A stretch of DNA of 64,000 nucleotides, from the sequence record MW879344.1; one strand, written 5' to 3'. The notes under the pieces were generated by a model. The model saw only the letters and a list, made by a program, of their open reading frames with translations, was not told the DNA's origin and searched no databases. Position numbers and translations under genes: made by a program. Below are positions 9,490 to 60,441 of the stretch, piece by piece. Within the stretch, counting starts at the first letter, position 1, and the number at the start of each line of letters is the position of its first letter.

Positions 9490-11292
9490 ATGGAGTGTTA
9501 TATAATGATTATTAAAGTTACCCAAAAAGTCGTGTCTCTTGAAGATTGTGTTTACGACATTGATGTACTAAACAAAATTCAAAAAGAAATTGGTTCTGCG
9601 TATGTAGTTAAGTATTCAGTATCGCCAAAGAATATTGTTTTTTATGTTGAAGAACATGGTAGTCAATTTACAATTGATATGGAAGTTGAAACACAGACAT
9701 ATGTATTGCCAGTAATTGCAGGATACGAATTACTTGAAAAATTCCCAAATTCATTCAAAAAGACTCGTAGAATTGGTGATAGTTCAGTAGCCGATATTGA
9801 CAATCCAGTTGTAGCTGAACTACATAAAGATGAAAATGCCGAAATTAATGAATATATAAGAAAAATGCGTAATTTGGTAAATTCTTACATTGGTAAGCGT
9901 ATTCCAAATAAGCAAATTGAATTTGTTAACGGTGGTGCACAAATCTTTGAACCAAACGGTGACATTGTACTATTACTTGACAAGTACGTTCTAGAGTTTG
10001 ATCCTGCATCATTTGATATTCAGGATGAATCTGAAATAAACACAACTCTTATTCGTCGTTCAGAAACAATTAGGGATGAATATTTCTTTACTTCAGATGA
10101 AGAAATTACTCCTGAAGAAATAAACAAAATTCTCAATGAGACAAAAGAATTTCTTGATGAATTAACGTATAAAGAACAACAACCAGAAGTGAGTAAAATC
10201 TCTGGAACGGATGAAATTCAAGATTTACTAAATGTGTTTGAAGCAATTGAAAAAGATTTGCCTTATGCAGCCGCAGTTCCATCTTATAATGAATATGAGA
10301 AAAATGTTCAAGCAATGAAAGAACTTCTAATAAATGTACGTGGTGCAGATGAGGATACAACTACGATGGCACAATCCGTTAATACCTATACTTCTATGGA
10401 TGCTACTGGTGAACTTCATGCTGCACCTTCTAAAGAAGTTGTTGCATTACGATGGAGTAAGATTCCAGAAGGTGCGGCTTCTGATGGAGAATATATTCTT
10501 AATGCCCCAGCTACAGAAGCAGAGATTGAAGAATTAACTCAAGAAGAAGTTCGAGAACTAACTAAAGTACAACGTACTAATGAAGTTATTGAAGTTGAAA
10601 ATGCAGTAATTAGTTTTGATGCATTTGATAGCTACGCTTCTAAACATCATGTAATTGGTTGGGATTTGGCAACACCAAGTACTCTATCAATTAAGTTTAT
10701 TGAGGGTATTACACCAGAAAGTACTATTAGGAAATTTCATGATATGATGGATAGTCTTGATACTGGATGGATTAATAAAGAATATATGAAACGTCTTCAA
10801 GATGCCGAAGTAAGTACTAAATTCTTAGCTGATCTCCGAAATATGATTATAGATGATAAAGATATTGCAGATGAGTTTATTACTCGCGTCAAAAAACATA
10901 ATGTATTTGTACGTGACAGTATGGCTAAAATCCGTGCAGCACTACTTGATATGGAAAGTGATTTTGAACGCTCACTAAAAAGTGAAGTTAATCTATCTAT
11001 TGATTGGGATAAACTAACTGCTTATGCCGCTAAGAAGGAACGTACAGAGCACCGTGTTAATGGTGTGCGTATTATTTCAGGCAATGATGGAGTAGATTCA
11101 AACGTAGTTCGTGTTAATTCTGAATATAACAATGGAGATTTCTTCATTCCTATACATTTACTAACTGATGAACTTCGTTCTAAATATGTCCTAGAAGATT
11201 ATCCACATTACATTGAAGATGTTCCAGATTATGCATTCTATGAAGTGCATTTAAATGGTCACTACATTCTTATTGAGAATACAGAACTTTAA
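9490..11292 (+). CDS. large acidic hypothetical protein
   Basis: 600 aa ORF; terminator at about 11300. Confidence 0.75.
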   Translation: MECYIMIIKVTQKVVSLEDCVYDIDVLNKIQKEIGSAYVVKYSVSPKNIVFYVEEHGSQFTIDMEVETQTYVLPVIAGYELLEKFPNSFKKTRRIGDSSVADIDNPVVAELHKDENAEINEYIRKMRNLVNSYIGKRIPNKQIEFVNGGAQIFEPNGDIVLLLDKYVLEFDPASFDIQDESEINTTLIRRSETIRDEYFFTSDEEITPEEINKILNETKEFLDELTYKEQQPEVSKISGTDEIQDLLNVFEAIEKDLPYAAAVPSYNEYEKNVQAMKELLINVRGADEDTTTMAQSVNTYTSMDATGELHAAPSKEVVALRWSKIPEGAASDGEYILNAPATEAEIEELTQEEVRELTKVQRTNEVIEVENAVISFDAFDSYASKHHVIGWDLATPSTLSIKFIEGITPESTIRKFHDMMDSLDTGWINKEYMKRLQDAEVSTKFLADLRNMIIDDKDIADEFITRVKKHNVFVRDSMAKIRAALLDMESDFERSLKSEVNLSIDWDKLTAYAAKKERTEHRVNGVRIISGNDGVDSNVVRVNSEYNNGDFFIPIHLLTDELRSKYVLEDYPHYIEDVPDYAFYEVHLNGHYILIENTEL

Positions 11293-16740: not shown

Positions 16741-17799
16741 ATGACTAACGGGTTATTTTTTGGAAAATTTGCCCCATTAACTGTGGGGCATATTTCAGCT
16801 ATTGTACAAGCTGCAACTAAAGTTGATGAATTGTACGTAGTACTATGTTGGGATGATAAGTTTCAAAGTACTCTTACGCCTGAACTCAAAAAAGTAATGA
16901 CTTTGCGTAATCGCCAAATGTGGCTGAAAGATACTTTCAAACATATGTCTCATGTTCATATAACTTATGTAGATGAGTCACCAATTCAATCATATCCTGA
17001 TGGTGCAAAAGACTTTACTGATCTTGTTCGTAATGAACTATTCAGTACATTCAATTGCACGGTTCTGGATAAAGTATTCAGTTCAGAAACTGAGTATAAT
17101 GATTACTTCAGCCAAAATTGGCCTGAATGTGAACATGTTCTCATTGATCCACCACGTGACTTTGTAGATATTAGTGCAACTCGCGTTCGCAGTAATCCTT
17201 ATTTGTATTGGGATTTATTAGCACCCGCAGCACATCAACATTTTGTTAAAAAGGTTTGTATCATTGGTGTAGAAAGTACTGGCAAAAGTACTTTAACTAT
17301 CAATTTGGCAAATCATTTTAGTACTCAATATGTTGAAGAAGTGGGACGTACTATTTGTGAAAATGAATACCATTGGGCAGAAAACATGATGAATATTGAA
17401 GATTATGTTTATGTAGCAATGGAACATAAAGTAAAAGAACACAAATATGCAAAAACAGCAAATAAAGTACTCTTTAGTGATACCAATAATTTGATTACAC
17501 TTTTTAGTGCAGAATGTATGGGTAAAACGAGTGCATTGCTTAGCCAGATGGCAAATGCTGAAGATTATGATTTAGTAATAATGCTTGACATAGACGTGCC
17601 TTGGGTGTATGATCCATTACGTCTTAACAATACACCGGAGCGGCGTCAAGAAACATTTGACCATCTCAAGTTTTTGTGTCGTGCACATGGTGTCAAATAT
17701 CATACCGTTAGTGGTGATTTTGACAATCGTTATAAAACTGCTGTTAATTTGGTTCAGCAATTACTAGAAGGTTCATTAAATGAATGCACTGATTACTAG
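16741..17799 (+). CDS. nadR: NadR-like NMN adenylyltransferase / ribosylnicotinamide kinase
   Basis: FGKFAPLTVGH, ISATRVR, GVESTGKST P-loop, VEEVGR, DIDVPWVYDPLR. Confidence 0.92.
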   Translation: MTNGLFFGKFAPLTVGHISAIVQAATKVDELYVVLCWDDKFQSTLTPELKKVMTLRNRQMWLKDTFKHMSHVHITYVDESPIQSYPDGAKDFTDLVRNELFSTFNCTVLDKVFSSETEYNDYFSQNWPECEHVLIDPPRDFVDISATRVRSNPYLYWDLLAPAAHQHFVKKVCIIGVESTGKSTLTINLANHFSTQYVEEVGRTICENEYHWAENMMNIEDYVYVAMEHKVKEHKYAKTANKVLFSDTNNLITLFSAECMGKTSALLSQMANAEDYDLVIMLDIDVPWVYDPLRLNNTPERRQETFDHLKFLCRAHGVKYHTVSGDFDNRYKTAVNLVQQLLEGSLNECTDY

Positions 17800-38234: not shown

Positions 38235-38567
38235 ATGACTATTAAAGTTAACGGTACTGTAACTGAAGTAAAATCAGTTGAAGTTGATATTAGCATAGTT
38301 GAACTCGAAAAAGCGGCAAATCAGTTGACAAACGGACAACTTCTTATTATATTAAAACGGAAGTTGGTTCAACAATTGATTTCAAAAGATCCTGCACTGC
38401 AAGGTGCAGAACTTTCATGGCATGGTACATGTTGGGAAGTTTTTGATTACTATGATTATCATCATCGTGAAGATAAGTACAAAAAACTTCGTGATTTAAA
38501 TGATGAAGAAAAGTACGCACTATCCACATTCAACGATGTATTTGAACTATTCAGGAAATTACAATGA
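38235..38567 (+). CDS. hypothetical protein
   Basis: ORF track. Confidence 0.6.
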   Translation: MTIKVNGTVTEVKSVEVDISIVELEKAANQLTNGQLLIILKRKLVQQLISKDPALQGAELSWHGTCWEVFDYYDYHHREDKYKKLRDLNDEEKYALSTFNDVFELFRKLQ

Positions 38568-38821
38568 CAGTACAAAAATTTGAAAAGTTACCTATCCAGA
38601 TTGATGCCCTTGAATGGACTGGTAATAATCTTAAAGAGTTAAAAGCCTTTGCGAGTCCAAAAGAAGTAAAGATTAATAATATGGGTCATTGCAAAATTGA
38701 AACTTTAGAAGGCTGGTTAACTGCATCGATTGGTGATATGGTCATCAAAGGTGTACAAGGGGAAATTTACCCATGCAAACCTGATGTGTTTGCACTAACG
38801 TATCGTAAAATTGAGGAATAA
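38564..38821 (+). CDS. conserved phage protein (IETLEG...IKGVQGEIYPCKPDVF family)
   Basis: widespread phage motif. Confidence 0.7.
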   Translation: MTVQKFEKLPIQIDALEWTGNNLKELKAFASPKEVKINNMGHCKIETLEGWLTASIGDMVIKGVQGEIYPCKPDVFALTYRKIEE

Positions 38822-38825
38822 AAAA

Positions 38826-39164
38826 ATGACGCACTAGAATGATAAAACTTGGATCTATGTATTTGTTCGTACTGATTTACCAATCGAACAAGTTGTAGTA
38901 CAATCAAACCACGCCGCTTATGAAAGCGGATTAGCATTCGAAAATAACAGTACTGAGACTAGTTCTCTAATCGTTATCTCGTGTAAGAATAAACATAAGT
39001 TACAAAAAGCATATGATGAACTCCAAGCTGAGGGTATTGATTTAATTCAATTCCATGAACCAGATTGGGATTATGGTTTAACGGCATTTGCCAGTGCTCC
39101 AGTAACCGCTGAACAGCGTAGTATCTTCCGTAAGTTTCAACTTTTTCGTGGAGGTGCTAAATGA
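38826..39164 (+). CDS. Pth2-like protein with in-frame TAG at codon 4 (missed by ORF track)
   Basis: GAGGA RBS, ATG ACG CAC TAG then 108 sense codons: YVFVRTDL..EQVVVQSNHAA...LIV...FHEPD...LTAFA. Confidence 0.75.
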
Positions 39165-39727
39165 TTTATCCTAACACTTTCGAAGAATTGCTACAAGTAA
39201 TGCAAAAAACTGAGCAAATGAAAGGTCTTAGTGTTCATGCACATGGACTTATGGTTGTTGAACAGTATAAAGTACTAATTTCAGAACTTGACACTGGATA
39301 GGGCGACCCTATATTACTTGAGGTATATGGTAAAATTAAAGATAAGATTTTATCAGATGATATTGTATTACGTTACCAAGAGTTTCATGATTGTGGTAAA
39401 CCAATATGTCGTGTAGTTGATGATGAGGGTAAAGTTCATTTTCCTGAACATGCTAATATCAGTGCAGATGTTTGGAGTAAGCTATTTCCAAATGAAAATG
39501 TCATTCAAGAGTTGATGCGAAAAGATATGACTTTCCATGTTGCAAAATCTGATGATTTTGATACAATATGGCAAGATCCTTTAGCACCTACTTTGTATGT
39601 AACTGCATGGGCTGAGATTTTAGCGAACTGTACAATGTTTGGTGGTCATGATAGCACTTCTTTTAAAATTAAAAAGAAGAAGCTAATCCAAGCAGGTAAA
39701 AAGTACTTAAACTCTTTACCTAAATAA
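39161..39727 (+). CDS. HD-domain protein with in-frame TAG at codon 47
   Basis: GGAGG RBS, ATGA overlap; HAHGLMV...FHDCGKP...HFPEHA; single TAG at 39299-39301, frame continuous. Confidence 0.75.
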
Positions 39728-39769
39728 TTTTAAGGCGGCTCCGGTCGCCTGTTTTAAGAGGTTTCCATT

Positions 39770-40231
39770 ATGGAAAGTAAAAATACTGAAAATGTAATGA
39801 CTGTTGAAATTTTCAAAGGAGCCACGCAAGAAACTATTTTTGTGTGTCGTTCACAAGGACAGTACTTTGCACCTGACCAAACGTATGATATTCATGAACA
39901 TGAATACATCAAACGCTACGATACACATTTTTATCATAAAATTGGTGAAAAGAATTGTCGAGAAAGTCATCGTGAAATCATGTTTGGTAAAGATGGAAAA
40001 CCTGGATATATCTTTAGTTTAGCTAAAGGTTTATCAAAATCATATAATTTAGGTGAACTTGACAGTATTATATTCACTTTTAGTGGATATGGTGACTGTA
40101 CGGGTGAAACCTTTATTGTTAGTACTCTAGACTATGCAGAAAAGGAAGAATTTCAGCAAATTGTCGATGACAAGGAATTACTCTTTAGTAAGTTTAAAGA
40201 AGCATTCCCTGAACATGAATTAAATTTATAA
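39770..40231 (+). CDS. hypothetical protein
   Basis: ORF track. Confidence 0.6.
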   Translation: MESKNTENVMTVEIFKGATQETIFVCRSQGQYFAPDQTYDIHEHEYIKRYDTHFYHKIGEKNCRESHREIMFGKDGKPGYIFSLAKGLSKSYNLGELDSIIFTFSGYGDCTGETFIVSTLDYAEKEEFQQIVDDKELLFSKFKEAFPEHELNL

Positions 40232-40436
40232 GGATGTATTATGATTACTACTGAAAATGTAACGCTATACGATACCCTAAATGAATCATATGGTTCTCCG
40301 TATGGCTTAGGATATAAGGGATATATCTTTGTGTTCGAAACTGTTGCTGAACGTGATTCTTGGATCAATGAATGCACCGACGAAGACTTAGATTATATCA
40401 TTGAAAATGAAAGTGTAGAAACCGAGGATTAAAACT

Positions 40437-40787
40437 ATGGGTTCGAATGTAGAAGCTTCAATTAATGTAAAACTTGTAAAACAACCACGTGGTATGAAAG
40501 GTGCTAAACCTGATATTGAACAAATTCATACTGATTTGTGTTCTATTGTTGAAAATGAAACGTTTTCTATTCATAGTAATACTAATATTGTGGCTGAACC
40601 AGAATGTCGTTGGAGTGAAATAGATTCTGATATGAAAAAATTATCAGTACTATATCCTGGAATTTTATTCACGGTTAAAGTTGTTATTCCAGACTATGAA
40701 GTAAATGAACTACATTACTTCTATGAAGGTAAAACTCACGAAGCTGTGATCACATTCTCACCATTCGATGAAGCACTTTTGAAATAA
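40437..40787 (+). CDS. hypothetical protein
   Basis: ORF track. Confidence 0.6.
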   Translation: MGSNVEASINVKLVKQPRGMKGAKPDIEQIHTDLCSIVENETFSIHSNTNIVAEPECRWSEIDSDMKKLSVLYPGILFTVKVVIPDYEVNELHYFYEGKTHEAVITFSPFDEALLK

Positions 40788-40805
40788 ATAAAGTACCACA
40801 AAAAA

Positions 40806-40834
40806 TGAAACAATATTATTTTTTGTGGTATAAT
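40806..40834 (+). promoter_or_regulatory. TGAAAC-N17-TATAAT promoter
   Basis: exact motif inside TACCACAAAAAA/TTTTTTGTGGTA inverted repeat. Confidence 0.7.
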
Positions 40835-40843
40835 ATTAGTATT

Positions 40844-40915
40844 CTCCTGTTAGCTCAATGGATAGAGCAGTAGCCTTCTAAGCTATAGATATAGGTTCGA
40901 TTCCTATACGGGAGA
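40844..40915 (+). tRNA. tRNA-Arg(UCU)
   Basis: cloverleaf, CT-TCT-AA. Confidence 0.93.
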
Positions 40916-40957
40916 CAAAACAAATACGCCTAAGCATATGCTTGGGCTTTTTTATGG

Positions 40958-41368
40958 GTGGATATTGTGGAAGAACAAACCTTTCCAGAAGAAATATTTA
41001 AAGCTCTAGAAGATATATATGTAAAATATATTATACCTAATGGTAAAGTTGATAAATTTCTATCATGGGCTGATTTAGAAGATAGAGATTTAACAGATTG
41101 TGGGTTTGAATTACATCCAGACTATGAAAATAAATATGAAAATTCTCACCATATTTGTTTGTATGGAACAATTGGAACCACTTATATAAGTGATAATAAT
41201 TTAACCTTCTTCTATCATGGTGGAGGACAACCACCTTCAGTACTTGACAATTACACTGAACTTACTGAAGAACGTCATTTCCAATTAGGGACAACCACCT
41301 TTCTTGCTGGTGTATTTGAATTACAAGATTTTCAAAAGATACACAACTATTTCAATAAGATTATGTAA
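40958..41368 (+). CDS. TEExxFQ-motif family protein
   Basis: LTEERHFQLGT. Confidence 0.6.
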   Translation: MDIVEEQTFPEEIFKALEDIYVKYIIPNGKVDKFLSWADLEDRDLTDCGFELHPDYENKYENSHHICLYGTIGTTYISDNNLTFFYHGGGQPPSVLDNYTELTEERHFQLGTTTFLAGVFELQDFQKIHNYFNKIM

Positions 41369-41819
41369 TATGAAAACTGTATTAGTATTTGACTATCACT
41401 TTATTGAACATGTAGAATATCCAGGTGGACCTGGTTGTTTAGGTACAGTAAAGTGGAATGAAATTGTAGAAGCTAATTTTACTACCTTCGAATTACAAGA
41501 CAATGGTTTATATTTGTCATGGGGATTGGAGCGGGAAGATGATGGTCATTATATAGAAATTCCAAGATATATATCATTTGATGAGATTGGTAAAGAACAG
41601 TACAGAATGTACAAAGAAGTCATAGAAAATGAATCATATTGGTTCGAAGATATTTCTATAGAAAGAGATTTTCTTTTATCGCAACTGTGCTATAATGAGT
41701 TGAACACCGTACAAAACCGTGCGTGGATTGAGTACTGGATTTTATATCAACATACTGAATGGACAAATGAATATGAAGAAAAACGAGCCAGAAAAGCCGC
41801 TGAAGCGTTCAACACGTAA
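41304..41819 (+). CDS. hypothetical protein (start probably 41370)
   Basis: ORF track. Confidence 0.6.
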   Translation: MLVYLNYKIFKRYTTISIRLCNMKTVLVFDYHFIEHVEYPGGPGCLGTVKWNEIVEANFTTFELQDNGLYLSWGLEREDDGHYIEIPRYISFDEIGKEQYRMYKEVIENESYWFEDISIERDFLLSQLCYNELNTVQNRAWIEYWILYQHTEWTNEYEEKRARKAAEAFNT

Positions 41820-42053
41820 TCCTTTACCGTGGCTTCAGCAATGGTTAAAAACGCCACAGATGCCTGTCAGTGAGCTTCCTGAAGTTCAAAAAAAGTGTAA
41901 AAAAGGGGCTTGACAATGAATCCGAGTAAGTGTAAAGTACATACATCGATGAGCGACGAAACTAAAGCTCGATTGAAAGAAATGATTAATCCGAAAAGTA
42001 ATGTTGTATTTGTAAACTTCAATTGTAAGTAATGGTAATTCAGGAGAATCAGA

Positions 42054-42323
42054 ATGAAGATGTTGAATTTACCTAGTACTGTAAAATGTAATGTCAATGG
42101 TTGTGAGCTTGAAGTTCCGCGTGGTATTCATTACATTGTAATTAATTACACTGGACATATTGACGCATATGAAACTAAACCATATTTGCGTGAAGGTATG
42201 TGGGTAAATGATGGTGAAGTAGGCATTTACCTTGGACATGCGAAACTTGAAGATAATGATGAATGGACACATCCATTCCTTGTTGATAAAAACCGTTTTA
42301 GTACATATAGTGATTGTGATTAA
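42054..42323 (+). CDS. hypothetical protein
   Basis: paralog-like to 18587..18832. Confidence 0.6.
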   Translation: MKMLNLPSTVKCNVNGCELEVPRGIHYIVINYTGHIDAYETKPYLREGMWVNDGEVGIYLGHAKLEDNDEWTHPFLVDKNRFSTYSDCD

Positions 42324-42409
42324 TTTTTGTTCAAGTCGTTGAAATTTTTGAGAAAAAGATGGAACGACTTAAAAAAGTCTGGTATAATATACGTATTGAA
42401 ACAACATAT

Positions 42410-42485
42410 GCCTTTGTAGCTCAGTTGGTAGAGCGGGAATCTCTAAAATTCTTTGTCGTCGGTTCGAGTCCGACCATCGGCACCA
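42410..42485 (+). tRNA. amber suppressor tRNA (anticodon CUA)
   Basis: GGAAT-CT-CTA-AA-ATTCT anticodon arm, canonical D/T arms, ACCA end; two mismatches in acceptor stem. Confidence 0.85.
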
Positions 42486-43818: not shown

Positions 43819-44265
43819 GTGGTAATGAAACTATTAACTACTTCTGATTTTAAAACACAACACCTTGCAAAAATGTGTGTTGAATCACATCTATTTCATT
43901 CATATGCATGGACACTGTTTCAATGCTTTACTGATGTAATGGATGATGAAGATATTGCAAATACATCTGAGATTATGATTCTACAAGATGATTCTGGTAA
44001 GAATATTGGTACTATCTTCCACAATCATGAATATGAATCCAATTATTGGGGTACTAATATTCAGGTGTTTGTTATTGAATCTGAACGTGGAAAAGGTTAT
44101 GGCAAATTGCTGTACAAAGAAATGAACAAACTTCTTATTCAAAAGAAATTTGATGGAACACTTTATGCTGGTTCAGGTATTCAGGGTTCGATGGATTTTT
44201 GGGGTAAGATGGCTGAATTACATGAAAGTGACGAATGTCTGACTTTACAGGCTGAGTACTTTTAA
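43819..44265 (+). CDS. GNAT-family acetyltransferase
   Basis: VFVIESERGKGYGKLLY acetyl-CoA motif A. Confidence 0.75.
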   Translation: MVMKLLTTSDFKTQHLAKMCVESHLFHSYAWTLFQCFTDVMDDEDIANTSEIMILQDDSGKNIGTIFHNHEYESNYWGTNIQVFVIESERGKGYGKLLYKEMNKLLIQKKFDGTLYAGSGIQGSMDFWGKMAELHESDECLTLQAEYF

Positions 44266-59996: not shown

Positions 59997-60114
59997 CAAA
60001 CTAAACAAACAATAAGGTGATTTTTATGCTATAGAATCCTAGTACTGGTCCTCCTAAAGAATTTAATTCTGATATAAACAACTCAAAATTAAACTACTAT
60101 AGGAAGAACATACC

Positions 60115-60441
60115 ATGTTAAACAAAGAACAATATATTACTGTAAAAAATACTTGGAAAGCTGTAAAAGAACATAACATTTTTGATCATGTGATCTATAA
60201 TGTACTTCGTGGAGTCCCATCTGATACTGGTTTCGCACCAATTACAGACAGGGGTCGTTTACACGCTAACAACAATGACCCGTTCAATATGTACAATTAC
60301 GCAGTTCGTGAAATTCATTATGAATTAAACGAAAAACGGTACAATTACGAAAAGACAGTAAAGCATTATTCTGAACTATTCGGCATTGAATTTACAAAAG
60401 AACTCATCGAAGAAATTGTTTCTTTGATTAAAGTTAAATAA
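60115..60441 (+). CDS. hypothetical protein
   Basis: ORF track. Confidence 0.65.
   Translation: MLNKEQYITVKNTWKAVKEHNIFDHVIYNVLRGVPSDTGFAPITDRGRLHANNNDPFNMYNYAVREIHYELNEKRYNYEKTVKHYSELFGIEFTKELIEEIVSLIKVK

Follow-up and report, generated by a model that had tools for sequence, protein, structure and literature searches.

How are two adjacent genes translated when each of them carries an amber codon in frame? The question is raised by a 64,000-nucleotide stretch (hereafter, the window) of the genome of Erwinia phage pEa_SNUABM_49 (MW879344.1; Eneladusvirus BF; 358,049 bp), in which a gene for a Pth2-fold protein (gene 1) and a gene for an HD-domain protein (gene 2) are each interrupted by a single TAG, and in which a gene for a tRNA with the anticodon CUA lies further downstream (Table 1; a window position equals the record position minus 248,000). 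The findings described below make it very probable that the pair constitutes a module of tRNA 3'-end enzymes whose translation is deliberately dependent on the phage's own amber-suppressor tRNA. Suppressor-dependent read-through had been proposed in an initial annotation of the window, and the proposal is now supported by the conservation of the TAGs, their recurrence at about 100 loci, a bias for A in the following base, linkage to tRNA(CUA) genes and an instance in which TGA and a tRNA(UCA) replace the usual pair.

Anatomy and identity of the amber-interrupted genes

Translation bore out the structures that the initial annotation had given for both genes, including their ribosome-binding sites, their overlap, the position of each TAG and the HD motif 3' of the second one (Table 1), and no frameshift was found in either. 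Gene 1 comprises 112 codons and gene 2 comprises 188, the TAG being counted as one codon in each case and being the only in-frame stop before the end of gene 2. The Shine-Dalgarno (SD) sequence of gene 1 overlaps the 3' end of the upstream open reading frame (ORF) at 38564-38821. There is no ATG, GTG or TTG anywhere in the frame of gene 1 in the 108 codons 3' of its TAG, and the most conserved residues of its product (R11, D13, Q22 and H25) fall in the stretch that a downstream start would delete. In the GenBank record, gene 1 is unannotated and gene 2 is cut into fragments of 46 and 70 amino acids (aa); the records of relatives likewise omit or fragment both genes. They have been overlooked because gene finders cannot call an ORF with a TAG at codon 3-5, and the annotation of such phages consequently needs correcting. 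With Salmonella phage Arash, an ML-TAG Pth2-like gene is annotated for its last 50 codons only, as 'peptidyl-tRNA hydrolase', and ARAGORN finds a tRNA(CUA) (L098:3810-3884; homologous loci are designated L with a number) where GenBank has tRNA-Phe.

Table 1. Coordinates of the gene pair, the tRNA(CUA) gene and associated elements in the window
Feature	Position	Strand	Remarks
SD sequence of gene 1, GAGGA	38812-38816	+	read from sequence; 9 nt before ATG
Gene 1, Pth2-fold protein	38826-39164	+	ATG ACG CAC TAG, 108 sense codons, TGA
In-frame amber codon of gene 1, codon 4	38835-38837	+	context TAG-A
SD sequence of gene 2, GGAGG	39150-39154	+	read from sequence; inside the 3' end of gene 1
Gene 2, HD-domain protein	39161-39727	+	ATG overlaps the TGA of gene 1 (ATGA)
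In-frame amber codon of gene 2, codon 47	39299-39301	+	context TAG-G
Terminator-like hairpin, GGCGGC-UCCG-GUCGCC then UGUUUU	39733-39756	+	just 3' of gene 2
Extended -10-like element, TGgTATAAT (putative)	42381-42389	+	about 20 nt 5' of tRNA(CUA)
tRNA(CUA), putative amber suppressor	42410-42485	+	ARAGORN, Rfam
Third candidate ORF, ATG CTA TAG AAT, 31 codons	60026-60121	+	probably outside the system in this phage

The Pth2-like fold claimed earlier for the product of gene 1 is borne out by an AlphaFold model (pLDDT 93), for which Foldseek returned the Pth2 structures 2zv3, 3erj, 1q7s, 1rlk, 1wn2 and 1xty with a probability of 1.0 and TM scores of 0.66-0.76, and no non-Pth2 fold at E < 0.1. A search of the Protein Data Bank (PDB) with the single sequence gave noise only, and the protein misses the gathering threshold of the Pfam PTH2 family (PF01981) with 17.2 bits against a cut-off of 23. 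Amber-bearing relatives clear the same cut-off (L042, 76.3 bits; L046, 31.7 bits; L040, 25.3 bits; and a fusion protein of Xanthomonas phage XacN1, 25.3 bits), and hence the product of gene 1 is best regarded as a divergent member of the Pth2 superfamily. The catalytic residues of Pth2 are presumably the Lys of a 'GK' motif and the Asp of a D-x-G-x-T motif. An invariant E-P-D...G.T is present in the gene 1 family, and a profile alignment with the single solved peptidyl-tRNA hydrolase that matched by sequence (chain 24bt_A; IRTDL..GKK.VQ..HA against VRTDLPIEQ..VQ..HA of the gene 1 family) places a conserved Gln opposite the Lys of the 'GK' motif, which leaves the exact substrate of the gene 1 protein uncertain.

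The product of gene 2 matched nothing in Pfam or PADLOC, and it passed no curated HD or CCA model: TIGR02692, the model for CCA tRNA nucleotidyltransferases, gave an E value of 1e-4 but only 21 bits against a cut-off of 439, and HDIG gave an E value of 0.07. The residues of an HD-type metal-binding motif (H28, H76-D77, H92, D117 and H121) are nevertheless invariant among 38 sequences of the family. The TAG sits between the conserved H28-G29 and the HD dyad, so that in the window H28 is encoded in the N-terminal piece while FHDCGK (FHDCGKP in full) and the later motif residues are encoded in the C-terminal one. An intact active site would therefore need a single chain, and neither piece alone is predicted to form one. 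Both pieces are covered by phrog_14850. Alignment with a modelled natural homologue that has no TAG puts the codon close to a loop predicted to join helices 25-44 and 50-62. This model (pLDDT 96) is all-helical, and its top PDB matches are the tRNA nucleotidyltransferase structures 3wfq, 3wfr and 3wfs (TMq 0.56-0.66, probability 1.0, with weak E values of 0.07-0.2), followed by the HD proteins PhnZ, 1xx7 and PgpH. A search of the PDB with the family profile found 3wfo, a class II tRNA nucleotidyltransferase, over the region HDIGKP...GK..F..H (E 0.017), and a homologue in BFVD bears the name 'putative polynucleotide adenylyltransferase'. Together, the HDCGKP...GK.HFP.H signature and the modelled fold appear most similar to those of the HD region in class II tRNA nucleotidyltransferases. 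The HD domain of Escherichia coli Cca has phosphatase and 2',3'-cyclic phosphodiesterase activities.

The HD and Pth2-like domains are found in one fused ORF in XacN1 and at L072, and the same fusion is present at L074. In XacN1 (L096:1937-2812) the fusion is preceded by MK-TAG-TIKAMKL, and ORF364 of the GenBank record begins at a later Met; the fusion at L072 has its TAG at codon 8. Such joining of the two domains suggests that both proteins probably act on the 3' ends of tRNAs. As to the earlier description of the pair as translation-rescue enzymes, the Pth2 fold of gene 1 supports it, the Gln in place of the 'GK' Lys speaks against it, and the product of gene 2 is better called a tRNA 3'-end enzyme.

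The tRNA(CUA) gene was recovered where the initial annotation had placed it, with an Rfam tRNA score of 60.1 bits against a gathering score of 29. The encoded molecule would be a canonical class I cloverleaf with an encoded CCA end and the anticodon loop CUCUAAA, and this loop is shared by 46 of 58 distinct CUA tRNAs. Comparison with 579 other phage tRNAs placed Lys(CUU) weakly first as its isotype. The TGGAAC-type promoter that had been assigned to the gene found little support, as the hexamer matches TTGACA at 3 of 6 positions and was not listed by a promoter scan; an extended -10-like element precedes the gene (Table 1). The tRNA-Arg gene at 40844 is likewise preceded by a TG-extended TATAAT (tGTGGTATAAT within 40805-40834, compared with cTGGTATAAT for tRNA(CUA)), and the presence of this element before both tRNA genes whose upstream regions were examined suggests individual promoters.

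The window has a GC content of 34%, carries nearly all of its genes on the plus strand and contains 20 tRNA genes (ARAGORN). When the whole 358-kb genome was scanned on both strands by analysis of gaps and orphan ORFs (a codon-usage score for in-frame TAGs was dropped because it gave many antisense false positives), genes 1 and 2 proved to be the only coding-strand ORFs that need read-through of TAG; they also account for the only unexplained coding-strand gaps with long TAG-bounded frames lacking a usable start. In a greedy set of 584 ORFs, 428 end with TAA, 122 with TGA and 34 with TAG. Only one gene of the window is solidly TAG-terminated, namely the ORF at 16741-17799 (context TAG-T), which was checked individually and has the domain architecture of NadR (AAA_28 and CTP_transf_like), as the initial annotation had noted for nadR among the stops it had checked. 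With in-frame TAG confined to two genes, the recoding is local, as had been surmised, and not a use of genetic code 15.

Recurrence of the in-frame stops and of the suppressor

The window is 99.5% identical to Serratia phage BF and approximately 83% identical to Yersinia phage fHe-Yen9-04, and more distant relatives of the region are found in Mimasvirus (CBB), GAP32, Kaldavass and XbC2. By alignment, the TAG of gene 1 is kept in 10 distinct relatives (Yen9-04, CBB, GAP32, Kaldavass and six metagenomic sequences), and the two codons that precede it vary (ACG CAC, TCT CAC, GCT CAC or GCA CAA). The TAG of gene 2 is kept in all relatives of the Eneladusvirus/Mimasvirus type that were examined, and both TAGs are kept in Yen9-04 (83% nucleotide identity) and in the metagenome contigs L006 and L008. 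The TAGs are thus not peculiar to this assembly. Homologues in metagenome protein databases (P0001-P0008 and P0028-P0031; contigs L006 and L008) show Gln at both positions. These apparent sense-codon orthologues were rejected: the underlying DNA reads TAG, a stop under translation table 11, so the Gln is an artefact of gene calling under code 15 and should be treated as such wherever it is met at these sites.

A wider survey covered 80 viral loci with homologues of gene 2, further loci with homologues of gene 1, isolates and genome contigs. An early in-frame TAG was defined as M-x(1-6)-TAG, with up to seven lead codons allowed, and 102 distinct sites of this kind were found at about 100 loci; Pth2-like genes account for 62 of them and HD genes for 40. 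Most leads are two to four codons long, and the listed sites have an SD sequence 6-10 nt upstream of the ATG with which the lead begins. Pth2-like genes begin, for example, ML-TAG-NKHWI, MT-TAG-ISEHTY, MK-TAG-VQPKTY or MCL-TAG-IKEGDK, and canonical Pth2 genes above the Pfam threshold are interrupted as well (e.g., MT-TAG-ITKQELL, 76 bits). With the HD genes, the TAG is either N-terminal or at one of two loop positions (G-TAG-G and PP-TAG-I), and its place differs by lineage. The homologues in phage RsoM2USA begin ML-TAG and MKS-TAG. Where, at the same loci, an ATG and a few codons are followed by a stop and a long ORF without an early start, the stop was TAG in 84 cases, TAA in 46 and TGA in 44, and the plus-strand cases with TAG belong almost all to the Pth2-like and HD families.

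The base that follows an in-frame TAG is A at 80 of the 102 sites, G at 16, C at 5 and T at 1. Among 135 genuine TAG terminators, taken as the stops of ORFs of at least 120 aa at the same loci, it is T in 59, G in 34, A in 26 and C in 16 (Fisher p = 2e-20 for the difference). In E. coli genetics, an A after UAG favors amber suppression and a U favors termination.

Co-occurrence of TAG with a tRNA(CUA) is also pronounced. At loci with at least one tRNA in the flanks, TAG and tRNA(CUA) occur together 64 times, TAG occurs without tRNA(CUA) 5 times, tRNA(CUA) without TAG 6 times, and neither occurs 12 times (odds ratio 25.6, p = 4e-7, uncorrected for shared ancestry); at least three of the loci scored as having no TAG are misses of the regular-expression search. 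The nearest tRNA(CUA) lies at a median distance of 1755 nt and, in each of 55 loci, on the same strand. Homologues free of TAG occur where the suppressor is absent (L129, L132, L141, L147, L148 and phage RaK2), and L129 and L132 have 18-21 tRNAs in their flanks with no suppressor among them. At the metagenomic locus L063, the gene begins MES-TGA-VLDKTY... and a tRNA(UCA) lies approximately 270 nt upstream, with no tRNA(CUA); a search of isolates found no further example of this opal type.

The suppressor itself is far less constant than the codons it would read. Its sequence differs greatly between relatives at the same genomic position, Kaldavass having a quite different CUA tRNA there, and the TAGs persist, which fits sites where the identity of the inserted residue does not matter.

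The arrangement does not appear to be confined to phages. In eight contigs from metagenome-assembled genomes of Obscuribacterales, Melainabacteria or Cyanobacteria (L136-L140, L143, L146 and L149), the coding sequence of an HD protein begins M-[L/T/S]-TAG (e.g., L139:5981-6790). The sole tRNA in the flanks of each (4.9-12.6 kb fetched) is a CUA tRNA located within about 170 nt 3' of the HD stop, and no Pth2-like gene was detected near the HD gene in any of the eight. At L139, the gene neighborhood resembles that of a chromosome, with an NRPS-like reductase, AsnB, Uma2, a methyltransferase and a NadR-like gene. At L138, L139, L146 and L149, a gene for a small multi-pass membrane protein (MLxRxxxKVLLFMFxLPALGLV...) lies approximately 250-700 nt 5' of the HD gene, and it is terminated by TAG in 4 of the 4 loci inspected.

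Objections and competing explanations

Several observations weigh against suppressor-dependent expression of the pair. The evidence for read-through is comparative-genomic throughout, and the counts that link TAG to tRNA(CUA) take no account of shared ancestry. Five TAG loci with tRNAs in their flanks have no tRNA(CUA) within 10 kb, and one of them, L065, has a tRNA(UCA) as its only suppressor. In gene 2, the base 3' of the TAG is G, a less favorable context than A. Where the TAG of an HD gene is N-terminal, a conserved in-frame Met follows 6-12 codons downstream, so an alternative start is possible for those genes. In the acceptor stem of the window tRNA(CUA), two neighboring positions are mismatched (U4.C69 and U5.U68), which could impair its charging; the mismatched stem is common to the BF-type, Yen9-04 and CBB phages and is retained in three genera, and the GAP32 version is fully paired. 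Finally, with Gln in place of Lys, the chemistry of the gene 1 protein may differ from peptidyl-tRNA hydrolysis.

The HD homologue at L065 (approximately 9780-10400) contains two in-frame TAGs, MKQDFQ-TAG and GET-TAG, and the tRNA(UCA) is the only suppressor among the 27 tRNAs of its flanks. This phage may be more widely recoded, or its CUA tRNA may lie elsewhere.

The rival that survives best accepts that read-through is real and takes the TAGs as harmless accumulations at 'detoxified' stops, arisen by neutral drift and without a regulatory role. Such a route to recoding has been proposed (Borges et al., bioRxiv 10.1101/2021.08.26.457843), and both the residue-tolerant positions of the TAGs, at the extreme N-terminus or in a predicted loop, and their persistence while suppressor sequences turn over would be expected from it. 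Drift, however, predicts TAGs scattered over many genes, and here they are found in only two adjacent genes of about 580 ORFs. The same two families are affected in about 100 loci with TAG positions that are independently different, and the strong bias for TAG-A, together with retention over deep divergence, indicates selection. Moreover, seven of the nine single-base changes of TAG yield a sense codon, so that loss should be easy. Neutral drift is for these reasons considered unlikely.

Less probable by some way is the view that the TAG is a genuine stop, which closes a tiny leader ORF ahead of re-initiation or a non-canonical start, or which separates two pieces of gene 2 that are made independently. 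In many cases the TAG is followed by AUU, AUC or GUU, each a possible weak start, and ORF364 of XacN1 is annotated from a Met of the conserved downstream kind mentioned above. Against this, roughly one site in three has AAY (Asn), which is not a start codon, after the TAG; the ATG and the ORF are invariably in the same frame; and gene 1 offers no canonical start in its 108 codons. Production of gene 2 in separate pieces is difficult to reconcile with an internal TAG that splits the conserved active-site residues. Neither version explains the linkage to tRNA(CUA), the switch to TGA and tRNA(UCA) at L063 or why loci that lack a suppressor also lack TAG.

Use of genetic code 15 (TAG = Gln), either throughout the genome or in a block of late genes, is more improbable still. 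It would account for the Gln that metagenome gene callers place at TAG and for the rarity of TAG as a terminator, but that Gln is the artefact described above, and no other coding-strand ORF in the 358 kb needs read-through. A code-15 genome would have in-frame TAG in a large share of its genes, the late ones especially, and only two genes were found to have it; the NadR-like gene ends in TAG-T, and the structural and lysis genes are not recoded. That the two genes are pseudogenes or products of sequencing error beside an unrelated suppressor tRNA, as the gaps and fragments left by GenBank annotators might suggest, can be dismissed given the same TAGs in more than 10 independently sequenced isolates and metagenome assemblies, the lack of frameshifts and other stops, strong conservation at the protein level, confident structure models and the family-wide pattern.

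Proposed mechanism and relation to known systems

In the suppressor-dependent module proposed here, ribosomes would start at the SD-preceded ATG of each gene and reach UAG at the fourth codon of gene 1 or the 47th codon of gene 2. Termination by release factor 1 (RF1) would then release a harmless tripeptide or a 46-residue fragment lacking the HD site, respectively, whereas insertion of an amino acid by tRNA(CUA) at a structurally tolerant position would yield the full enzyme. As tRNA(CUA) presumably competes with RF1 at these codons, the yield of both enzymes would follow the ratio of functional (i.e., processed, CCA-bearing and charged) suppressor tRNA to RF1. With the TAG placed early or in a loop, failure would be cheap and any inserted residue acceptable. 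An expression gate operated by amber read-through is a reasonable, if hypothetical, interpretation.

What the gate would serve is a speculative matter. The likeliest purpose, though a somewhat doubtful one, is a coupling or feedback loop that would match the supply of the two enzymes to suppressor activity. Their substrate in such a loop might be the suppressor tRNA or something that suppression leaves behind, for instance dropped-off peptidyl-tRNA. A simple timer is the alternative. The feedback loop is favored by the minimal bacterial version, which comprises the HD gene and the tRNA only and is seemingly chromosomal. By extension, and more tentatively, large phages and some bacteria might share a portable cassette in which a stop-codon suppressor tRNA is combined with a Pth2-like hydrolase, an HD phosphohydrolase or both, as tRNA 3'-end enzymes whose genes have the same stop at codon 2-7 and so close the loop. 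If this were true, the cassette would answer the long-standing question of what suppressor tRNAs do in standard-code phages, and it could also seed the evolution of genome-wide recoding.

The closest parallel is with the code-15 recoded phages (Borges et al., bioRxiv 10.1101/2021.08.26.457843; Peters et al., PMC9523058), in which a phage tRNA(CUA) reads in-frame TAG in a host of standard code. They too have a low GC content and few TAG terminators, and regulation of expression has been proposed for their recoding. Unlike those phages, the present system involves two adjacent non-structural, tRNA-related genes with one TAG each, in a tRNA-linked cassette with the TAG mostly at codon 2-7 that is conserved in jumbo phages, in phages of T4 size and in some bacterial contigs. 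The autoregulation of prfB (PMC12421855) offers another likeness, in that a translation-factor gene has a conserved early in-frame stop that reports on decoding or termination. However, its UGA is rescued by a +1 frameshift and senses release factor 2 (RF2), while here the frame is unchanged and rescue would require a dedicated suppressor tRNA. By this comparison, a two-gene, N-terminal, tRNA-linked cassette appears to be absent from both the code-15 phages and the prfB systems.

With the Q-beta A1 protein and retroviral gag-pol, the output of a protein is tuned by decoding a stop as sense with a fixed efficiency. Those systems use the normal tRNAs of the host and gain a C-terminal extension, whereas here the stop is N-terminal or internal, the virus supplies the tRNA, and nothing useful would be made without read-through. 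Pyrrolysine and selenocysteine provide a further precedent, as a dedicated tRNA reads a stop in specific genes and its gene is linked to its targets. The TAG positions considered here are, by contrast, tolerant and non-catalytic, and the 'Pyl' label given by ARAGORN derives from the anticodon only; the ordinary D-loop, 5-nt variable loop and 5-bp anticodon stem of tRNA(CUA) are unlike those of tRNA-Pyl. Pfam scans of 10 neighboring ORFs found no Pyl genes, the rest of the genome not having been searched for pylS, and no PylRS, pylBCD or SelB-type machinery was found in the ORFs scanned near the tRNA, SECIS and PYLIS elements not having been looked for.

Suppressor tRNAs have been reported from phages of the same kind. 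The report on XacN1 read through annotated TAG terminators and gave no identifiable target for its two CUA suppressors (PMC5852040), and those on RsoM2USA (PMC8504454) and Atu_ph07 (PMC6102473) inferred several potential targets from the numbers of stop codons without naming any. XacN1 and RsoM2USA carry homologues of the genes considered here, and, unlike these reports, the present analysis identifies candidate targets. The orphan suppressors of jumbo phages thereby acquire named candidates in a conserved gene pair for tRNA-end processing near the tRNA, with a testable model in which expression is proportional to suppressor activity. Phage tRNA clusters would, in addition, be linked to tRNA 3'-end repair or recycling. 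The pair may also represent a minimal, gene-specific recoding and maybe a first step to the genome-wide recoding of gut phages, and the same cassette is present in seemingly bacterial chromosomes. No description of this arrangement was found in the literature covered, which did not extend to subscription journals.

TAG-free canonical Pth2-HD pairs were observed in Psychromonas, Bosea and a Pseudomonas serbica megaplasmid (L147, L148 and L141), each with a well-formed tRNA just 5' of it (L147:5342-5419, L148:5408-5485 and L141:4766-4855). These tRNAs have the unusual anticodon AUU or AAU or, in the case of a class II GCU tRNA, an A.C closing pair. Short leader ORFs (MKLPFS and MMTLISH, each then closed by a stop) lie out of frame with pth2 at the TAG-free pairs, and the pth2 frame at L148 has no canonical start. 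Pth2-HD cassettes in general may be accompanied by a dedicated odd tRNA, and the AUU and AAU tRNAs hint at further kinds of unusual decoding being exploited by the cassette.

Just 3' of gene 2 lies a hairpin (Table 1) with a predicted folding energy of -13.1 kcal/mol (z -2.4). Yen9-04 retains its GGCGGC and GTCGCC arms with a different loop. A scan of the window for consensus terminators did not list it, and it may serve as a terminator. Within the tRNA cluster, 1.3 kb after the suppressor, is a gene for a GNAT acetyltransferase (43819-44265; Acetyltransf_1, 25.2 bits). A GNAT gene that is terminated by TAG lies directly 5' of the HD gene at L136, and a neighboring gene at L008 has a weak match to the antitoxin TacA1.

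A third, weaker case of amber read-through had been proposed at 60026-60121. The sequence is present, but in the window 2 extra nt put this ORF and the downstream gene in different frames. In Yen9-04 and CBB, the corresponding ML-TAG ORF is in frame with a downstream gene of 108 aa, to which it would add about 30 residues, and ATGCTATAGAA and the bases that flank it are invariant in both. As coding read-through in this phage, the case was set aside in view of the broken frame and of conservation at the nucleotide level that resembles a regulatory element. The whole spacer between a tRNA-Gly gene and the next gene (59998-60125 in the window; L134 and L135) is almost invariant across genera, with the order AACAAACAATAAGGT..ATGCTATAGAA..AGTACTGGTCCTCCT. 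Either a promoter or RNA element or a read-through extension since lost by this lineage could account for it.

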